NCBI GenBank assembly: GCA_965240325.2
Contig: OZ251231.1
Span: 2,480,001-2,544,000 of the forward strand
DNA: 64,000 bases
DNA from: Rebecca billardiae RCC1528
Lineage: Eukaryota > Protista > Haptophyta
Direction of reading: 5' to 3'
In this document: positions 11,260-21,182 of the stretch, piece after piece
How the letters are laid out: each line of letters begins with the position of its first letter
How positions within the stretch are numbered: the first letter of the stretch is position 1
The notes under the pieces: model-generated
Database searches by the model: none
What the model saw: only the letters and a program-made list of their open reading frames with translations
Told to the model about the DNA's origin: nothing
Position numbers and translations under genes: made by a program

Positions 11260-13648
11260 ATGCCATTTGCATGCATCTGCGTGGCAGTGGCTATGGCCAG
11301 CCCCAGCGTCCGGCCCGGGCAGGCTTGGTCCGCGCAGCTCAGCTGCCCAGTCTTCTTCGAGACGTGCGGCGGCTTCACCAACCAGCGCATCTCTCTCATC
11401 CACGGTGCGCACAGCGAGGGGCTCGAGTGGGGTGAGCGAGCGCTCCGCCGACCGAATGCGCCCGTCCGCTCCGCTCACGCGCGCGCCCCGTGCGCGCCCC
11501 GCAGGGCTGCTGGTGGCACACGTGACGAACCGAGTCGCGGTGCTCCCCAACCTGAACGGGAACGGCGAGCAGAACGCATCGGACGGCTACTCCGAGGCCG
11601 GCGCGAACGCGCTCCCGTTCGCCGCGTTCTACGCGGAGGAGGAGACGATCGCCCGCCTCGCCGCGATCGGCGTGCGCGCCCAGCCGCTGAGCGCCGTGAG
11701 GCGGCCGGCGAGCGTGCAGCGCGTTGCCGTGAAGCAGATGAGGATGGGCCGCGAGCAACAGGACTGGCGGAGCCGCTTCGGCGTGTCCGGCGGCGGGTGC
11801 TCGCCGATCGCGCTGGACTGCACGATCTTTGCCGTCGACGTCAAGTCGAGCCAGAAGCTCCGCCGCCTGCTCTGGCGCATCGATGCGGCGCTCGTGCCAT
11901 CCGAGCGCGTGCGCGCGCAGGCCGCGCAAATGGAGGCGCGGCTGCGCGCGCGGCCGGGCGCGCAGCACGGCTTCACCGCGCTGCACCTGCGCATCGAGGA
12001 GGACTGGCGCGAGCACTGCAGCCGATGGACGAACGTGCGCGCGGGCCGGGACAACTGCGACTCCAACTCCGAGCAGCTGCACCGCGTCCTCGCCATCGAG
12101 CGCGTGCCGCCCAACCGCACCGTGTACCTGGCGGGGCAGGTCTTTGACGGCGCGCTGCGCTCGATGCGCCAGTTCGACGCGCTGCGCGCGCGGTATGACG
12201 TGGTGGCGAAGGGCGGCGCGGGGATCGGGCCCGAGGACGCGTCGGACTTTGGGGCACGGCGCGAGCTGCACGCGGCGGTGGACTACCTGCTCTGCTCGCG
12301 CGCCGACCACTTCATCGGCAACTCCGTCTCCACCATGTCGGCGCAGCTGCTGCTCAGCCGCAGGTCGGCGCGGACGCGCGCCAACGCGTCCGCTGGCGGC
12401 TCGCGGACGCGGCCCGCGGGCCGGTGGGCGCTGCGGGACTTCCACTACAACGGCGGTAGCATCCCACTCGAGGAGGTGCTGCTCGGCTCCGACGCGGCCA
12501 AGCGCGAGGTGCTCCGCCGTGCCGAGCTGCGCACGTGGGCCTTTGTGGCGACCGACGGCCCGCCGGACGAGCTCACGCGCACCGCGGTGCTCTCGGCACT
12601 GCGCCACACGGCGCTCTCGCCCGTCTGCCTCTTCCTCGGCTCGCGCACGAGCGCGATGGCGCGCTGGCTCGAGTCGCACGACGTCGTGATGCTGTACCAC
12701 ACGCCCGCATGGGCGCCGCAGCTCTGCGCCGCGGCCAGCCGCGACGCGGGCACGAAGCAGCGCGCGCCGCAGGGCGCGCGCGCTCAGTCGTACGCGCGGC
12801 TGCTCGCCCAGCTGGCGCGCGTCGAGCTGCCCACGCTCGGATTCGTCGACCCGTTCATCCTGTACACGGACACGGACGTGCTCTTCGTGCGCAACCCGAC
12901 GCTCGAGATGTTCGGCCCGCTGCCCAGCTACTACTCGATCGGCGTCAAGCCCGAGCAGCTGCGCCCCGCGTGCACGAAGCGCTCGAGCTTCCTGCTGCCA
13001 GAGCAGGCGGAGCCACACGGGCCGCACCGCACCAGCTGGCTCAAGAGCGCCGGGTGCAAAGCGGACCCGCACCAGCCGGCCGGCAGCCTCGGCGTGATGC
13101 TCCTCCACACGCCGATGATGCGCCGGATGCACCCGACCTTCGTGAAGCACGCCTTCTCCGGCACGATGGTGAGGCACATCGCCCTCGCCGCCACGAAGGC
13201 GCACCTGCGCGATCAGGAGCAGAGGATCTTTCCAAAAGAGTTCTTGGGCCGCGCGCTCGTGCGCGCTGCGCCCGCGCTCAACTGGATGCCGATCTGGGGC
13301 GTGAACGAGTCGGCGGTGATCGCGCACTTCCACGGGGCCAAACCCGCCGACTACCGCCGCGCGCATGACAGCATCCGCGCGGCGTACGGCTCGGTGCGCA
13401 GCGAGGACGTCGGCCGGTTCCACTGGGCGCAGTACTGGCAGGGTGCGGGTGCGGCCAGCCCGCACGCGGCGCATTCGGCCGTGCAGCTCTGCTTGCTACG
13501 CGCTGGCTGCTACGACTTTGTCACGCGCTGGTACGATGCTGGGCAGGAGCATCATGGCGCAGATGGTGCTCCGAGCCCCGAGCACGGCGCGATGGCGTCG
13601 TCGCCTGCTGCGCCCTCGATCGCAAGCAGCTGTCAGACCACGCCCTAG
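11260..13648 (+). CDS. O-fucosyltransferase-like domain fused to a GT8-like (DxD) glycosyltransferase domain; intron 11405-11504
   Basis: GGFTNQRISLIHG|LLVAHVTNRVAVLP, LHLRIEEDW and DYLLCSRADHFIGNSVSTMS fit the POFUT/O-FucT fold. The C-half has ILYTDTDVLF, GVMLL, LNWMPIWG and HFHGAKP (GT-A/GT8-like). Hydrophobic N-terminus. Confidence 0.75.
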
Positions 13649-14564
13649 CAGGAGCAGCAAGTAAGCGGCTGCTGATGACGTGATGGCGATGCAGTCAATA
13701 GTCATGCAGACGACGACGACGGACGACGTCAGTTGCCATCGCGAACTACGTACTGCTCGCGCGCGGTCGCGACATCATCAGGCAGTCCGTCCGTGTCGTC
13801 ATCTGATTCTACTTGTAATCGCGGTCATGAATAAACATGGCGCGCTGCGCTGCCAGATGATATGATGTGATGATATGAATATATATAATATATATCCGCC
13901 GACGATATTATATTGATATGCGGACGATATTGAATCGCGTCGATCGTCAGACGACTCATTGACGTCACTCGACCTCGTGTCTCGTCAGCGCGACGTCGTC
14001 ATCAGCAGCTACTGTGCCACGCCCGGCGGGAATGGTCGTCAGTGATGCTGTTACTCACTCATCTGTCACTCGTCATCAGAGTCGTCAGTCATCATCATCA
14101 TTCAGTCCACCGCCCTGGCAGCAGCCGGTAAGGTCGCGCCCGCGCCGAGCTCGGAGCTGCGTACTCATTAGCAGCTGCAAGTCGTCATCATTCATCGTCG
14201 TCTCACTACTCGTCATCCGCCGACGGCCGAGTCGTCCGCCGCCAGCCGCCAGGCGGCCGTGAGTGGGCCAGGGTCGTCAGGGCGCGGTCATCAGCCACAT
14301 GCGCTCTTGATCGTTGTCATCCGGGCGCGCGACGAGCGCTCGATAGCCTCGCGCACGCCTTCGTAGCTCGCCAGCACGCTCATCACGATGGCATTGCATC
14401 AGCAGCACGTGCAGCACGTGCAGCAACCTTGGGTCGTCAGCATCGTCATCATCATCATCATCACGCGGGTGCAGCCACACACAGCGAGTGCGTGCGTTCG
14501 GCGCAGCGCACAATCATAACAACCATCCTTCATCAGCCACCATCGGCACCATGGTAGGCGCTCA

Positions 14565-17500
14565 TCACACGGTTGAGTCGACGCTCACAGGGGGGTCCAT
14601 CGGATCGTAGTTGAGCGCGACCACCCGGTGCATAGGGCTGCCTTGGTGTCCGGCGGGCGCGTCGTCCGAGTCCTTGAGTGCCGGGTGCGCGCGCTGCAGC
14701 TCGGCGAGCAGCTCCTGGAGGAAGGCCTTCGTCTGGCTGACGGCGGGTAGCGTCGCTCGGATGTGCATGCGCACCCTGCGCGCGAGGCAGAGATGCAGAA
14801 TGGCGCGCATCGCGGGGCCATGGCTCAGTCGTGCGGCGGGGCCGCGCGCGCGCCGTGGGCGCACCGGCCCGGGATGGGCGCCATGGGCCGGGCGCGTTGC
14901 AGCGCGCGCGCTTACGGCTGGTCCAGATGTGCGAGATAGCCGAGTGCGAACATGAGCGCCTGTACGACGGCGACTAGGAGCACCCAGTTCATGCCACGCC
15001 GCCCCATGTCCACGAAGCACGCGCCGTACGCCAGCATCGTCGCGTTGGACACGAGGAACAGCCAGGTGCCATGTGAGAGCCGCGCAAGCTCGAGCACGGA
15101 GCGGCGCGCTCGCGCCGTGCCCACCTCGCCGACTGCGTCCAGAGCGCGCTCGAGCAGCAGGCCATCAGAGTGCGCGGCGGCCCGGGCGTGCGCGGCCGCC
15201 GCTGCGCCGGCATCCGGCGGCGGGATGCCCGCCGCCGTGCTCGCCGCCTTAAGCTGCGGCAGCAGCGCCAGCAGGCCCTGCGTGTCAGCTGCCCACGTGC
15301 CGTGCGCGTACGCGCCCGCGGCGACGCGCGTCTGTAGCCGGTGGCAGTGGCCGAGGAGCTCGACGTAGCAGCGGTGCTGGGTGGATGCGACGGCGTCCGT
15401 GGGCGGCGTTGGGCCAGCTGTCTTGACCAGCATCGCGATGCGCTGCACCGCGCCGACCTCGTCCGCGACGGCGGCGCGCAGCTCCGCCGCGCGCCGCTCG
15501 AGGCTGAGCACGAGCACCACCCAGGCCGCCCCAAACACGGCGCCCAGCACGCCGAGGTTGACGAGCAGGCCCTTGGAGGTCGCGCCGAGCATGAAGCGGA
15601 AGATGTCGAGCGTGAACCAGAGCAGCACGATCACGACGGCGTACATCAACACCGCCGCCGCGTGCGGGCTGAGCGCGCAGAACGTGAGCGGCCCCTGCTC
15701 GTGCGCGTCGCCAAGGTCGGCAGAGACGACGGCGTACCGGCTGAGCGCGCACAGCTGGCCGAGCCACGCGCGGCCCGCTGCCGTGCACAGCACGGCCGTG
15801 GCGAGCGCGGCGAGGATGATGGCGATCATGACGGCGCCCGTCGCCCAGCGTACGGTGTTTCGATAGCGCAGCATCGCTTGCGCCCCCATGCGGCCGCACT
15901 TGCGCTCGCGCTCCTGCGCCTCAAGCTCGGCCTCTGCGCGCGCAAGCCTCGCCTCCTCGGGCGGCAGGTGGCGCGTGCGCTTGCCTTTGTTCGGGCACGA
16001 CTGCACGGGCGAGACCATCCCGTCGCTGAAGGAGCCCGGCGTGCCGCGGAAGCAACCGAGCACGTACGGCGCGTTCGGCGTGGCGTAGTACCGGTACTGC
16101 CCGTCCGAGCCGATTTTGCCGTTGCACCTGCGCGGCAGTGCGTGCGTGGACCGGAGGCGTGCGGCCGCAGCGCAAACGCGTGAGCAGCTGGGTGCGTGCG
16201 GGCTGTGCCATCCGCGCGCGCGCGGGCGGGGTACGCACTCGTCAAGCGTGGGCATGAGCGTGGAGGTCGAGCCATTGTTCGCGTGCATCGACACCATCAG
16301 CACGCCCTCCTCGTCGTATGGCCCCATGATTGGGAAGCCGTCGAGTGCCCAGCCGATCAGCGGCGACGGCTCTGACTCGGCGTCCCAGCTGGCGACGAGG
16401 TCCGCGTCGTCCGTCGCCTTCCACCAGTCCTTGCTCTTGGGCACGGAGATGCCGAGCTGCTCGAAGAGGCAGCGCGCCGCGCCGTGGTAGTGGTACACGT
16501 GGTCGGTCGAGTCGATATGCCCGCCGCACTCGTCGAAGTACTTGTCGAGCGTGAGCACCCACTTGCCCGTCTGCGCGTTCAGCCGGCGATGGCGCGACAT
16601 GAACGGGACGCCGTTCACCGCGACGCCGAGCGGCACGCGGTGCGTGAGCGGCGTCGGTTCCGAGCGGTAGCGCGGGTAGTTTGGCAGCGTGAACGTGAGG
16701 TCTTGCGCGGTCGGCGTGTATTTGCCCAGCTTGAAGCTGCCGTCCTCCGGGTTGACGATCGGGCCGTCGCGCTCTGAGTACTTGTGGTCGGGGCAGCTGT
16801 CCGAGCTGAACACAAAGGTCGTCTTGGTCGAGGAAGCAGTCACCGCGTCGTGCATGCACATGTTGTTGGCGAGCACGGTGGACGAGTTGACCGTGGCGTT
16901 CGGCGCGGAGCAGATAACGGAGAGCGCGGGCACGACCGGCTCAGCGCACTCGGGGTCGGCATGGGCGCGTGCCTGGGCGTCCGTGTAGCCGGGCGGCGTG
17001 ATGTACTGGTAGTAGCAGAGGTCCATGAATGCGGACTTGTCGTTGCCGCAGTCGCTGCAGCCGCACCCACAGCCGCACCCGCAGCTGCCACAGCCGGAAC
17101 CGCACCCACAGCCTCCGCAACCACAGCTGCACCCACAGCCGCAGCCTCCACAGCCGCCGCAGCCGCCGCAACCTCCGCAGCCGCCGCAGCCGCCGCAGCC
17201 GCCGCAGCCGCCGCAGCCGCCGCAGCCGCCGCTGCCGCCGCAGCCGCTGCCGCACAGGCTGTCACATCCACTGCCGCAGCCGCTGCCGCAGCCACTGCCG
17301 CACCCGCTGCTGCAGCCGCTGCCGCACCCGCTGCCGCACCCGCTGCCGCACCCGCTGCTGCAGCCGCTACCGCACCCGCTGCCGCAGCCGCTGCCGCAGC
17401 CTCCGCACGTGCCGTTGTCGCCGGAGCTGCCGCAGCTTCCACACCCACCACAGCTGCCGCAGCCGCTGCCGCACCCGCTGCCGCACCCGCTGCCGCAGCC

Positions 17501-17827
17501 TCCGCACGTGCCGTTGCTGCCGGAGCTGCCGCAGCTGCCGCAGCTTCCACACCCACCACAGCTGCCGCAGCCACCACAGCTGCCGCAACCAGTACCATTG
17601 CTTGTCCCACAGCTGCCGCAGCTGCCACACCCACCACCACAGCCGCCGCAGCTCCCGCAGTAGCTGCTGCCGCAGCCGCCGCAGCTCCCGCAGGTCGCGT
17701 TGCCGGTGATGTTCAGGCTGCCGCAGCTCCCGCAGCTGCCGCACGTCGAGCCGCAGCCATCGGCTTGGACATGGTCGAGAACGAGGGCCAAAAGGACCAG
17801 GGTCGCGAGCGCGAGCGTACAGCGCAT
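14565..17827 (-). CDS. Signal peptide + Cys/Gly/Ser repeat + YHYH domain + coiled coil + multi-TM DUF4239-like domain; introns 16128-16238 and 14776-14915
   Basis: Signal [22 protein letters not shown], then ~65 Cys in CGS/CGSG/CGG/CG repeats. YHYH-family motifs [15 protein letters not shown]...[25 protein letters not shown]|CNG...YRYYAT..PY..GCFRG. C-terminal TM pairs end in LDQP|VRMH. Confidence 0.8.
17048..17757 (-). repeat. Coding Cys-Gly-Ser tandem repeat array
   Basis: Repeated ccgcag/gctgccgca units on the + strand; 9-, 12- and 6-nt periodic blocks. Confidence 0.95.
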
Positions 17828-18112: not shown

Positions 18113-20020
18113 TCAAGCGCGTCGGCTCGCGCTGCGCTGACGCGGCAGCTGGCTGTCCAGCACGGCCCGGATGGCCACCGGTGTGAAGAGGTCGCTCATG
18201 ATCGGTGCGGCCCCGACGGTGTGCACGAGCTTGTCGGCGGGGCTGTTCGGATGGTCGAGGTACGGCAGCGGCTTGATCTCTCGCGCGCCGGTGCAGCGCC
18301 GGCTGCCAGGGCCGCACTCGGCGGGGTTGTACCGCGGGTCGGGGCACGCCGATGCGCGCGAGACGATGGGCTGGCCCGTGCGGTCGTGCGCGCGCATCAG
18401 CTCGCAGTACAGGTCGCACAGCTGGCACATGCGCGTCGAGCGGTGCACGCTCCACAGCTGCGATAGGCGCGTATAGCTCGGGTCGAGCACCGAGTCGTCG
18501 TCGCGCCACGCGAGGTACTTTCGGTACTCGTCCGGATGCCGGTCGAGATGCAGCAGGTACTCGGCGAGCGCCTTTGGCGAGTCGAAGTTGTGCGCGTTGA
18601 TCACCCACGGCGCGCGCGTCGAGATGGCGACCTTCTCGACGAGCGGCGAGCCGAGGTAGACGGGGACGACGCCGAGGCCCATCGGGTTGAAGACCTTCTC
18701 GGAGACGTAGCCCTCGCAGCGCACGCGCTCGAACGAGAGGTGGAACTTGTAGTGCATCAGGTGGCTCGTCACCACCTTGTCGCGCTCCTTCTCCGTCGCG
18801 TCCGCGCCGAGCGGGCACGGCTCTGAGATGTTGAACCGCTCCTTCTTCGGCTTGCTGTCGCATGGCAGGTCGACGTTGTGGTTGCACATGCCCATGCGCG
18901 CGACGGGGATGTACCGCTCGAGCTCGGTGATGTACGCGTCCCGCCCCGAGTACTCCTCGCAGTCGCTCACGAGCGACGAGACGAGCCACTTCCGCTCCTC
19001 GACCGGCACGATCTTGCGCTTGCGCAGGTGCTCGATCGACGGCAGGAAGGCCGGGCACACGATGTCCGCCGTGTACAGGTCGTAGCCGACGGTGGCGTTG
19101 AAGGCGCGCTGCGCGAAGAGCGGCAGGGCGGTGATGTCGCGGTTGTACAGCACCCACAGCTGCCGCGCGGGCTGCGACGGCGGCACCACGCCCGTCTCCT
19201 GCATGTGCCTGCGGAAGGCGTGCGCGTGCTGGCTCTCGTTCACGCCAGTCTCGACCGCCGAGGTCGGCAGCCGGTTGCGCGTGACGTACTGCTGCGCTGC
19301 GTGGTGCACGAGGAAGCCGTACGCGACCCAGACGTCCGCGCGCGCCGCCTCGGCCGAGCCCGCCTCCGCCATCGCGATCTGGCACGCGTCATCCACCTCC
19401 TTGCACTGCTCGTCTTTGCATGCGCTCTTCTCCGGGATGCAGCGGCGGAAGCCAGAGCCCGCGGCGGGCACCCACGCGTTGTCCACCTTGGTGCCCATGC
19501 GCAGCTTCGGGTGGAGGACGATGCGGGTGGGCTGTGGCCGGTGGCATGAGAGCGGCTCGTCGAGGAAGCCGCGCTCCGCGCGGAGCTCCGCAAGCGTCCC
19601 TTTACTCGCCCACTCAAGGCCCGAGCGTTCTCGCGCGGCGAGTGTTGTCGGCGCGGCGGCCGCCGCAGGCTCGGGAGCCGGGACGCGTTCCTGCTGCGTG
19701 CTAGCGGTGGCGGAAGGCGCGCTGGGCTGAGGATCGGTGCGCGCGGCCTCCTCTGCCCGCTCCGATCGGCGCCCGTCGCCGCTGCGCGCGGCTGCGCCCG
19801 TCTCCGCCGCGGGCGCATCCGGGATGCCCTGCATTGCACGGATGAGCGTCTCGTCCGCCTGCGAGAGCGTAGCGCGCTCCTCGCCCGCGGAGGCGTGCGC
19901 AGCCGTCTCGATGCTATCGCTCGAGCGCACCACCGGCCGTATGAGCTGCACGGTGAGCATCAGGCACACCACCGCCACGAGCCCCAAGGCATAGAGCAGC
20001 CGCGAAGCGGCGGCCGCCAT
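18113..20020 (-). CDS. GT10 alpha-1,3/4-fucosyltransferase-like protein, type II membrane
   Basis: GT10 motif HYKFHLSFERVRCEGYVSEKVFNPMGLGVVPVYLG and INAHNFDSPKALAEYLLHLDRHPDEYRKYLAWR. N-terminal TM LLYALGLVAVVCLMLTV. Confidence 0.88.
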   Translation of the reverse strand: MAAAASRLLYALGLVAVVCLMLTVQLIRPVVRSSDSIETAAHASAGEERATLSQADETLIRAMQGIPDAPAAETGAAARSGDGRRSERAEEAARTDPQPSAPSATASTQQERVPAPEPAAAAAPTTLAARERSGLEWASKGTLAELRAERGFLDEPLSCHRPQPTRIVLHPKLRMGTKVDNAWVPAAGSGFRRCIPEKSACKDEQCKEVDDACQIAMAEAGSAEAARADVWVAYGFLVHHAAQQYVTRNRLPTSAVETGVNESQHAHAFRRHMQETGVVPPSQPARQLWVLYNRDITALPLFAQRAFNATVGYDLYTADIVCPAFLPSIEHLRKRKIVPVEERKWLVSSLVSDCEEYSGRDAYITELERYIPVARMGMCNHNVDLPCDSKPKKERFNISEPCPLGADATEKERDKVVTSHLMHYKFHLSFERVRCEGYVSEKVFNPMGLGVVPVYLGSPLVEKVAISTRAPWVINAHNFDSPKALAEYLLHLDRHPDEYRKYLAWRDDDSVLDPSYTRLSQLWSVHRSTRMCQLCDLYCELMRAHDRTGQPIVSRASACPDPRYNPAECGPGSRRCTGAREIKPLPYLDHPNSPADKLVHTVGAAPIMSDLFTPVAIRAVLDSQLPRQRSASRRA

Positions 20021-20126
20021 GCTGCTGCGTCCAGTACAGGTCTGTACAGCAGTGAAAATAGTCGCGTAGTACGTAAAGATTAAGGTGAGCAGCGCGGGCG
20101 CGGGCGCGCGGCCCCCCCCCCGTGCG

Positions 20127-21182
20127 ATGGCGGGGGAGACGCTCGAGTGTCGTATCTGCCTCGAAAGCGATTTGGCCCGCAACCTCATCGCGCCGTGTGA
20201 CTGTGATGGCAGCGTGCGATGGACGCACCCAGACTGCCTGCGCAAGTGGGCTGTCGAGACCAGAAGAACGCAGTGCGAGATCTGCCACGGAAACTATAGG
20301 GGGCTCGGGGCGGATGAGGTAGTGCTCGACGTGCACATGGCGAACATCGCCGACCGTGCGGCCGAGGCGGAGGACCTTTTCTCGGACCACATGCTACGCG
20401 AGCGCTTCTTCCGCGGCCGCACAGACGACGTCTTCCACGAGCAGGAGGCGCTGTACAATCGTTCGCGCTCGTCGCTCGGCGTCATGCTCATCATTGTCTT
20501 CCTCATGTTCGTTGTGACCACCAGGCCGCGGCACGAGATGCAGGCCATCAGGCGTAACGCGCTGATGCAGCGCCTCGCGCGCGCTCGGCGCGCCAACGCG
20601 ACGAACGCGACGGCCGTGCAGATCGGCTCGGCCGCGGGGCCATGGCCCGGTGGCTCTGGCGCAAGCGACGAGTACGGCCACCCGGCCCACCCCGTGCAGC
20701 TGCGGGACCCGTTCGGTGACAGCGCCCTCGACGCGGAGCTGAACGGCGAGTCAGTCAGCCTGCGCGCCGCCAAGCAGCGCTTCGCCGACGAGTTTGGTGA
20801 GCCTGTGAACGGGAGCGGCCTGGACGGCGCGATTGTGCCGCGCCACGCTGCACGGCCGCACGCTGAGCTGGACGACCCGCGCCTGGCCGCGCTCACGCCG
20901 GCCCAGCAGCGCGCGTGGCGGCAGCGGTACATTCACGACTACTACGCGCGCAGGCGGCCGGCCGATGTGATCTGGGAGGCGCTCATGCGCGGCTTTTTCA
21001 TCGTGCTCATGCTGCGCCTTATCCTGATCCGCGCGCGCCAGCTGCGCGAGGGCCAGGCTGGCATGCACTTTGACTATGACGGCGTCGACTTTGCCGATCG
21101 AATGTTTAACAACCACCACGAGCCGATGGTTGTGCGCCACTTCAATGCGAACAGGCGAGCAGGTGCTTACATCCTCGTCTGA
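20127..21182 (+). CDS. RING-CH (RINGv/MARCH-type) E3 ubiquitin ligase with two TM segments
   Basis: CRICLE...LIAPCDCDGSVRWTHPDCLRKW...CEIC. TMs LGVMLIIVFLMFVV and GFFIVLMLRLILI. Confidence 0.88.
   Translation: MAGETLECRICLESDLARNLIAPCDCDGSVRWTHPDCLRKWAVETRRTQCEICHGNYRGLGADEVVLDVHMANIADRAAEAEDLFSDHMLRERFFRGRTDDVFHEQEALYNRSRSSLGVMLIIVFLMFVVTTRPRHEMQAIRRNALMQRLARARRANATNATAVQIGSAAGPWPGGSGASDEYGHPAHPVQLRDPFGDSALDAELNGESVSLRAAKQRFADEFGEPVNGSGLDGAIVPRHAARPHAELDDPRLAALTPAQQRAWRQRYIHDYYARRRPADVIWEALMRGFFIVLMLRLILIRARQLREGQAGMHFDYDGVDFADRMFNNHHEPMVVRHFNANRRAGAYILV

Follow-up and report, generated by a model that had tools for sequence, protein, structure and literature searches.

A Cys/Gly/Ser array joined to a YHYH domain in a predicted haptophyte membrane protein and its protist relatives

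Metallothioneins are small, cytosolic proteins, and ultra-high-sulfur keratin-associated proteins and insect high-Cys chorion proteins consist of Cys-Gly-Ser low-complexity repeats of variable length that are densely cross-linked by disulfides. YHYH (PF14240) and PF14023 (formerly DUF4239) are both widespread protein families without a tested function, and searches of the literature on YHYH, PF14240, DUF4239 and PF14023 found no functional study. For YHYH, a Zn site formed by three His and an Asp has been predicted, and a hydrolase acting on cell envelopes has been suggested (Iyer et al. 2021; PMC7824862); in the 2026 N-Zinclopedia preprint, a three-His Zn site was predicted in a YHYH-family protein and the family was termed an uncharacterised 'blank slate'. 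In diatom transcripts across the ocean, YHYH is among the prevalent, regionally patterned Pfam families.

Here we describe a gene in which a long Cys/Gly/Ser array, a YHYH domain and a PF14023-like membrane part are encoded together on the minus strand of a 64,000-nucleotide stretch of the haptophyte Rebecca billardiae RCC1528 (contig OZ251231.1, positions 2,480,001 to 2,544,000). This whole stretch is referred to as the window, and its own numbering is used throughout. An initial annotation, made from the letters alone, had called the functions of YHYH and DUF4239 unknown, in agreement with the literature, and had regarded the architecture as unfamiliar. We likewise found no description of it, and searches on Cys-rich low-complexity phytoplankton proteins returned nothing relevant; the same layout is, however, present in a metagenome locus (L009) and so is not unique to this genome. 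Judged from its sequence, the product is a secretory-pathway membrane protein composed of a signal peptide, a sequon-punctuated array, a YHYH domain with an Asp and three His, a linking transmembrane (TM) helix, PF14023 and a cytosolic tail. On the same basis, the window gene is a member of an undescribed protist family in which a hypervariable Cys-Gly array lies beside or inside one YHYH clade and the membrane part is exchangeable.

The array and its pairing with one YHYH clade

After a hydrophobic start of 22 amino acids (aa), the array extends over 241 aa and contains 66 Cys, 107 Gly and 45 Ser, matching closely the signal peptide and the array of ~235 aa and ~65 Cys that had been read at first. 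The spacing of Cys along the array goes from 3 to 4, returns to 3 (~10 times) and ends at 2, and there are five N-x-T sequons (NIT, NAT and three NGT), so that the spacing steps and the sequons listed in the initial annotation were all found. Five of the six Asn of the array sit in these sequons, and the aromatic residues are limited to one Tyr. The underlying DNA consists of imperfect tandem repeats with periods of 9/12/18/99, over which the C/G/S frame is the only one free of stops. Cys is encoded in the array by 51 TGC and 15 TGT codons, compared with 20 TGC and no TGT in the rest of the gene, and non-synonymous counterparts at Cys positions are rare (one Tyr and no Arg, against the 15 synonymous TGT). 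No second Cys-dense array was found within the 64-kb window.

The domain that follows the array matched the PF14240 profile over its full length (profile positions 1-193 of 193), scoring 76.5 bits (E 3.5e-21) with the whole protein as query and 80.3 bits with the piece alone; the gathering score is 25. An intact YHYH domain had been proposed initially, with a PF14240 profile search as the way to check it; the score lies well above the gathering score, and Asp432, His437, His446 and His448 are all present, confirming that reading. In a 61-row alignment of the family (A4), D168, H173, H182 and H184 are at least 90% conserved and occur in the window gene; in protein numbering, D432, C434, H437, Y445, H446, Y447 and H448 are near-invariant family-wide, with the DECGGH and YHYH motifs at aa 432-448. 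In an alignment of the algal/protist clade (A2) the metal-site motif is invariant, and D439/D442 and H443 are fixed as well. The second half-site of the domain lacks His across the whole protist clade, whereas the bacterial protein P0001 retains C.GH..YHYH; this half-site is not required for Pfam membership. Conserved Cys pairs within YHYH (C170/C189 and C304/C328, A4 columns) suggest an extracellular, disulfide-bonded ectodomain. AlphaFold2, run on the alignment, gave a YHYH model with a predicted template modelling score (pTM) of 0.74 and a predicted local distance difference test score (pLDDT) >90 in the core, with low values in the intron-encoded stretch and the first 60 residues. With this confident model, Foldseek and VIA-align found no solved fold alike, the Atlas search returned YHYH clusters only, and sequence and profile searches of the PDB for YHYH gave no match.

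The nearest YHYH relatives in the database, P0007-P0010, begin abruptly at a KYTPT motif. At locus L003, reading the frame further upstream from P0009 reveals a C/G/S array that is truncated by the end of the contig, and in L004 and L005 the N-terminal CPDH strand of YHYH is separated from the KYTPT segment by an inserted Cys-rich array of 170-200 aa (48-59 Cys). Further loci were obtained by scanning metagenome contigs of the Joint Genome Institute (JGI) with the alignment of the protist YHYH clade. Among these, L006 and L007 carry a Cys-Gly array and a shared multipass TM module, L010 a long (CGAG/CGSG)n array and a single TM helix, the L011-L020 cluster a split DOMON domain and a YHYH domain flanked on either side by (CGG)n arrays, and L009 a Cys-rich patch and PF14023, while L008 has an EKEG repeat at the array's place and the multipass TM module of L006, L007 and P0009. 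In total, a Cys-Gly array accompanies this YHYH clade in eight distinct lineages: that of the window gene and, among other marine protists, L003, L004/L005, L006, L007, L009, L010 and the L011-L020 cluster. None of the ~47 other rows of the set, most of them bacterial-type, has an array, and they contain 4-10 Cys each, 7-8 being typical. A quick maximum-likelihood tree placed ten protist rows on one side of a branch (SH-aLRT, the Shimodaira-Hasegawa-like approximate likelihood-ratio test, 86), with the order within the group unsettled, and this branch was nested in a strongly supported (97*) set of 14 that includes array-less eukaryote-type proteins.

The repeat units differ in every lineage (CGS, CGSG, CGG, CGAG, CCATEKCGTG, CGGCSTS), and so do the codons: L006 uses TGT/GGT throughout, L013 more TGT than TGC, and the window gene mostly TGC. 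Since Cys and Gly are kept with differing codons, selection acts at the protein level, and the conserved features of the arrays, as judged from these comparisons, are their composition and position. The arrays lie membrane-distal to YHYH or within it and never between YHYH and the membrane. The membrane parts, by comparison, vary among the relatives (7TM-like module, single TM, glycosylphosphatidylinositol (GPI)-like tail, DOMON), and the multipass module is homologous among L006, L007 and P0009. Because the array-YHYH pairing recurs over lineages with differing membrane parts, the array and YHYH are best read as a conserved ectodomain cassette and the membrane module as interchangeable. The family has probably been overlooked because contigs end within the arrays and gene calls start after them (P0007-P0010, L003, L006, L007, L009, L010). 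A word search with the 707-aa YHYH and TM piece gave no match, probably because it was swamped by low-complexity words, and the whole-length search limited to YHYH gave three distant matches only.

Several relatives showed additional features. The multipass module downstream of YHYH in L003, L006, L007 and L008 has an F(L/F)xDP motif and no Pfam match, and its language-model features resemble those of 7TM proteins of the THH1/TOM1/TOM3 and GPR137 types, a similarity (score 0.90) that is no more than a lead. In L013 (10-2307, plus strand) and the rest of the L011-L020 cluster, the DOMON domain (PF03351), matched in two stretches with 52.6 bits, is apparently split, the order in L013 being DOMON N-half, (CGG)n array, YHYH core, CPDH strand, second (CGG)n array and DOMON C-half; the position of the CPDH strand after the YHYH core points to a possible circular permutation. 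L008 (42-3305, plus strand; 33% GC) has an acidic (EKEG)n stretch at about residues 300-360, between a CPEH strand and the YHYH core, and more E/K/G repeats N-terminally. P0010 has a His/Asp-rich stretch of the HGHPDHDHENDHDDED type at residues ~225-255, between YHYH and the C-terminal hydrophobic tail, which looks like a metal-binding low-complexity segment.

Gene structure and membrane part

The minus-strand open reading frame (ORF) is unbroken from the ATG at 17827 to a TAA at 14912-14914 (971 aa as a read-through ORF), in local DNA of ~70% GC. From the sequence comparisons below, the gene is read as three exons (17827-16239, 16127-14916 and 14775-14565) with a predicted product of ~1003 aa; the third exon, ending at 14565, accounts for the coordinate at which the gene had been made to start in the initial annotation. 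No record with exactly the sequence of the read-through protein was found. The positions of the features are given in Table 1.

Intron 1 is well supported. BLASTP alignments to P0009 and L009 show a gap that spans exactly the 37 residues read through from it, the homologues are continuous at LD.C(N/G)G where the window ORF has these residues, and excising the intron regains the family motif LDEC-NGK. Within the intron, the coding pattern of codon-position GC is lost, with a dip at third positions (GC3) and a rise at second positions (GC2), and the stretch that it would encode has a pLDDT of ~52-55 in the AlphaFold2 model. Intron 2 and exon 3 are probable: after intron 2 the codon periodicity shifts to the exon 3 frame, in which GC3 is 0.84-0.96, and the exon 3 tail extends collinearly the LD(S/T)PYR.H.. 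helix of the homologues (from residue 196 of P0004 on; E 0.048 in a single comparison). GC3 remains at 0.84-1.0 in one and the same frame all the way from the signal peptide across the YHYH/TM junction, so there is no sign of a hidden gene boundary. Two neighbouring genes joined by chance read-through were considered and ruled out by the absence of a stop, the continuous codon periodicity and the same fusion in L009. The proposal that the array, YHYH and the membrane part belong to one gene is thus borne out by coding periodicity that is unbroken over the junctions and by the fusion of YHYH and PF14023 in L009.

The membrane part begins with a linking helix, a single TM segment that the hydropathy scan placed at ~662-684. 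Two TM pairs follow, the first at ~722-776 and the last ending at ~967, and a long soluble segment of helical character lies between them. The PF14023 profile matched with 22.6-22.9 bits (E ~7e-5 to 9e-5; profile positions 33-220 of 232, exon 3 not joined), below the gathering score of 32. An exhaustive phmmer search of 1.84 billion representatives returned three relatives only, P0004 (E 2e-19), P0005 (4e-11) and P0006 (3e-4), all 300-400 aa long; P0005 and P0006 stand alone and pass the PF14023 threshold (60.4 and 63 bits), while P0004, cut off at its contig start, lies just below it at 30.9 bits. The P0004 locus (L001:1-1095) lies at the start of a contig of 4.1 kb, and its frame is interrupted by a stop shortly before the homologous part. 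In the Atlas search by language-model features, 29 of the 30 matches were PF14023, in clusters mostly of diatoms and haptophytes. In L009, a single ORF encodes the Cys patch together with YHYH (50 bits) and PF14023 (73.9 bits), and one BLASTP alignment with the window gene covers both YHYH and PF14023, up to the end of the latter (E 6e-35, 25% identity); L009 is one of several contigs of ~2 kb. This collinear alignment indicates that the fusion of YHYH and PF14023 is old and real and not a chance read-through. Because of its homology to bona fide members, the tail of the window protein is classified, on sequence grounds, as a divergent member of PF14023 despite its own sub-threshold score. The DUF4239-like TM domain of the initial annotation therefore stands by homology to P0005, P0006 and L009, although not by its own profile score.

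The single-sequence AlphaFold2 model of the membrane tail was poor (pLDDT 58.7), and its Foldseek matches were generic helices. The Pfam scan gave no match to the canonical bestrophin family PF01062, and a profile search of PDB sequences with the PF14023 part found nothing. We infer a topology in which the ectodomain is outside, one helix links it to a four-helix PF14023 core, and the helical segment and the C-terminal tail are cytosolic.

Table 1. Predicted features of the array gene, in order of translation (window coordinates)
Feature	Position	Strand	Basis
Start codon and signal-peptide-like N-terminus, aa 1-22	17762..17827	-	first ATG; hydrophobic stretch 1-23 (Kyte-Doolittle), then ..VQA/DG
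Cys/Gly/Ser array, aa 23-263	17039..17761	-	composition; sole stop-free frame; synonymous changes (TGT, GGN) that preserve Cys and Gly
Remainder of exon 1: poorly ordered N-terminal extension, 'CPDH' strand, first half of YHYH	16239..17038	-	Pfam PF14240; AlphaFold2 core pLDDT >90
Predicted metal-site motif FDECGGH..DH.YHYH (Asp432, His437, His446, His448; also Asp439, Asp442, His443)	16484..16534	-	alignments A4, A2; literature prediction
Intron 1, 111 nt, in frame, GTGCGT...CGCGCAG, within YHYH	16128..16238	-	homologue gap, codon-position GC
Start of exon 2: second, degenerate YHYH half-site (CNGK..YRYY) and conserved C-terminal CP..G extension	15983..16127	-	
Charged helix, aa 620-645 (initially read as a short coiled coil)	15893..15970	-	sequence; helix at pLDDT 82-92 in single-sequence model
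Linking TM helix, ~aa 662-684	15776..15844	-	hydropathy scan; equivalent helix in L009 and P0005
PF14023 (ex-DUF4239, 'Bestrophin-like') domain, aa ~715-971: TM pair, helical soluble segment, TM pair	14916..15685	-	Pfam, phmmer, L009 collinearity
Probable intron 2, 140 nt, GTAAGC...CGCGCAG	14776..14915	-	TAA of the ORF within donor; acceptor type as in intron 1
Probable exon 3: cytosolic C-terminal tail, 69 aa and TGA at 14565-14567	14565..14775	-	collinear with homologues; GC3

The array gene is flanked by a gene for a GDP-fucose protein O-fucosyltransferase (PF10250, 55 bits; 11267-13648, plus strand) and one for a GT10 fucosyltransferase (PF00852, 108 bits; 18113-20245, minus strand), the latter ending ~290 bp upstream of the ATG of the array gene. 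These fucosyltransferase-type flanks could be a coincidence or could be connected with the way in which the sequon-rich array is glycosylated. Just downstream of the stop of the array gene, at ~14440-14470 (minus strand) in the presumed 3' untranslated region, is a short (ATG/GAT)n microsatellite.

Possible roles of the array and the YHYH domain

The reading that we place first, and that we hold as possible rather than probable, is that the array and the predicted His3-Asp site act jointly as a thiol/metal unit. The two would then operate as a single extracellular or lumenal unit, in which the His3-Asp site of YHYH would bind a transition metal of the Zn or Cu type and the flexible array would offer a dense thiol(ate)/disulfide field beside this metal centre. 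As a high-capacity ligand or redox buffer, the array would capture, hold or pass on metal (or electrons) at the membrane surface. PF14023 would anchor the unit in the window gene and may add an ion-conducting or signalling role, without being required for the cassette. Joint action of the array and the metal site is favoured by the strict pairing with one domain, by the insertion of arrays into that domain, and by the His/Asp stretch of P0010 and the DOMON fusion of L013. The initial annotation had pictured a metallothionein-like sponge that could feed a His-rich metal site coupled to a membrane domain, possibly a channel-like one. Coupling of the array to YHYH is backed by the eight lineages, set against the ~47 array-less rows, but coupling to a channel is weakened by the unrelated membrane parts of the relatives.

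Several points weigh against a thiol/metal unit. The signal peptide directs the array to an oxidising environment, in which its 66 Cys would ordinarily be expected to pair as disulfides, and known metallothioneins are cytosolic. The make-up of the array resembles that of disulfide cross-linkers, for example ultra-high-sulfur keratin-associated proteins, and the EKEG repeat of L008, at the array's loop, fits a spacer that tolerates changes in composition. In addition, no solved structure like YHYH was found (PDB, Foldseek, VIA-align), so there is no mechanistic template.

The main and close rival, which we consider rather unlikely overall, is that the array is a disulfide cross-linking tether that binds a membrane-anchored YHYH enzyme, a predicted metallohydrolase, to a matrix, scale or cell covering, and itself handles no metal. 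This would suit an array that the signal peptide and N-x-T sequons put in the oxidising secretory pathway, at the membrane-distal end of an ectodomain whose conserved YHYH Cys pairs suggest disulfide bonding. The array is also highly variable in length and repeat unit, a trait of structural low-complexity proteins, with Thr-rich spacers in L013 and the EKEG repeat in L008 at the array's place. The prediction of a cell-envelope hydrolase by Iyer et al. (PMC7824862) points in the same direction. A generic cross-linker would not, however, be expected to be tied this closely to one domain clade, including insertion into a domain loop; the 64-kb window contains no other such array; and the Pfam scan gave no keratin, chorion or metallothionein match, a weak point given low-complexity filters. 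An array with ~25-30% Cys that is tied to one YHYH clade on varied anchors gives a testable handle on the surface role of YHYH, in metal or thiol chemistry, and metal capture and disulfide cross-linking by the array-YHYH family can now be tested against each other. If the metal reading is true, the family would be a new kind of phytoplankton protein for trace-metal handling, and if the cross-linking reading is true, it would be a new membrane-to-matrix tether.

Taken further, the thiol/metal reading would describe a modular trace-metal/thiol-redox cassette of marine phytoplankton, at the cell surface or in the vesicle lumen and on varied membrane devices, in which the metal- or redox-loaded ectodomain of the window protein gates or supplies a bestrophin-like ion pathway. 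We regard this wider proposal as unlikely; if true, it would be a previously unknown acquisition or sensing machine and would give two orphan Pfam families their first functions. It is slightly more improbable that the array and YHYH form a sensor cassette, which would sense redox or metal outside the cell and relay the signal to a bestrophin-like channel here and to a 7TM receptor-like module in relatives. The cassette does occur on two unrelated multipass modules, PF14023 (window gene, L009) and the module of L006, L007 and P0009, whose features point to the THH1/TOM1/GPR137 type. Nevertheless, other members have a single TM or a GPI-like tail and would be unable to transduce, the 7TM assignment is weak, and the channel function of PF14023 is a Pfam name only.

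By analogy with fused precursor/BURP cyclases, the initial annotation had also considered that the YHYH metalloenzyme modifies the adjoining Cys array in cis, and the fact that the array strictly adjoins the domain, or is even placed inside it, would allow for this, as would the conserved His-rich site. We now judge it very unlikely: no BURP or other enzyme family for ribosomally synthesised and post-translationally modified peptides was found in the Pfam scan, the arrays lack conserved core-peptide units as well as recognition flanks and cleavage sites, and the repeat units are wholly different between lineages. Least likely of all is a neutral repeat expansion or annotation artefact (a functionless in-frame GC-rich microsatellite, or an array that is spliced out), as might be suspected from imperfect 9/12/18-nt repeats in a 70% GC genome, since such arrays are found in eight lineages with other codons and on contigs of 48-58% GC (values of the metagenome loci), the Cys frame, which is also that of the signal peptide and YHYH, is the sole open one, and Cys positions show 15 synonymous TGT as opposed to one Tyr and no Arg.

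Comparison with known systems

The array of the window protein resembles metallothioneins in its ~27% Cys, in its C-x-C/C-x-x-C spacing (2-4) and in the near absence of aromatics (one Tyr). In contrast to metallothioneins, it is about four times longer, dominated by Gly, located behind a signal peptide, sequon-bearing and part of a large membrane protein, and no metallothionein family matched in the Pfam scan (E up to 1). Keratin-associated and chorion proteins, as they are generally described, are free-standing matrix proteins of unrelated organisms and not appendages of a metal-site domain. As in BURP-type fused cyclases, one polypeptide of the window gene unites repeats with a domain that is rich in His and presumably binds metal; unlike these cyclases, it has no BURP domain, and its repeats have no defined core peptides and flanks.

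The membrane domain shares with PF14023 proteins the order of a TM pair, a helical soluble segment and a second TM pair with an LD.P end, in a group of which P0005, P0006 and L009 pass the threshold. It differs from its nearest stand-alone relatives of 300-400 aa in that it bears a large ectodomain through an extra TM helix. The term 'bestrophin-like' is the Pfam name for PF14023, with no match to PF01062 or to a solved structure, and channel activity is thus implied by name only. Like the YHYH family (PF14240) as a whole, the window protein has the D.C.GH and YHYH motifs with an Asp and three His, and it is predicted to expose them outside the cell, as in the secreted or extracellular bacterial and phage members. 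It differs from the family at large in carrying a Cys-Gly array, in its fusion to a multipass membrane domain and in belonging to a protist clade whose second half-site has lost the His.

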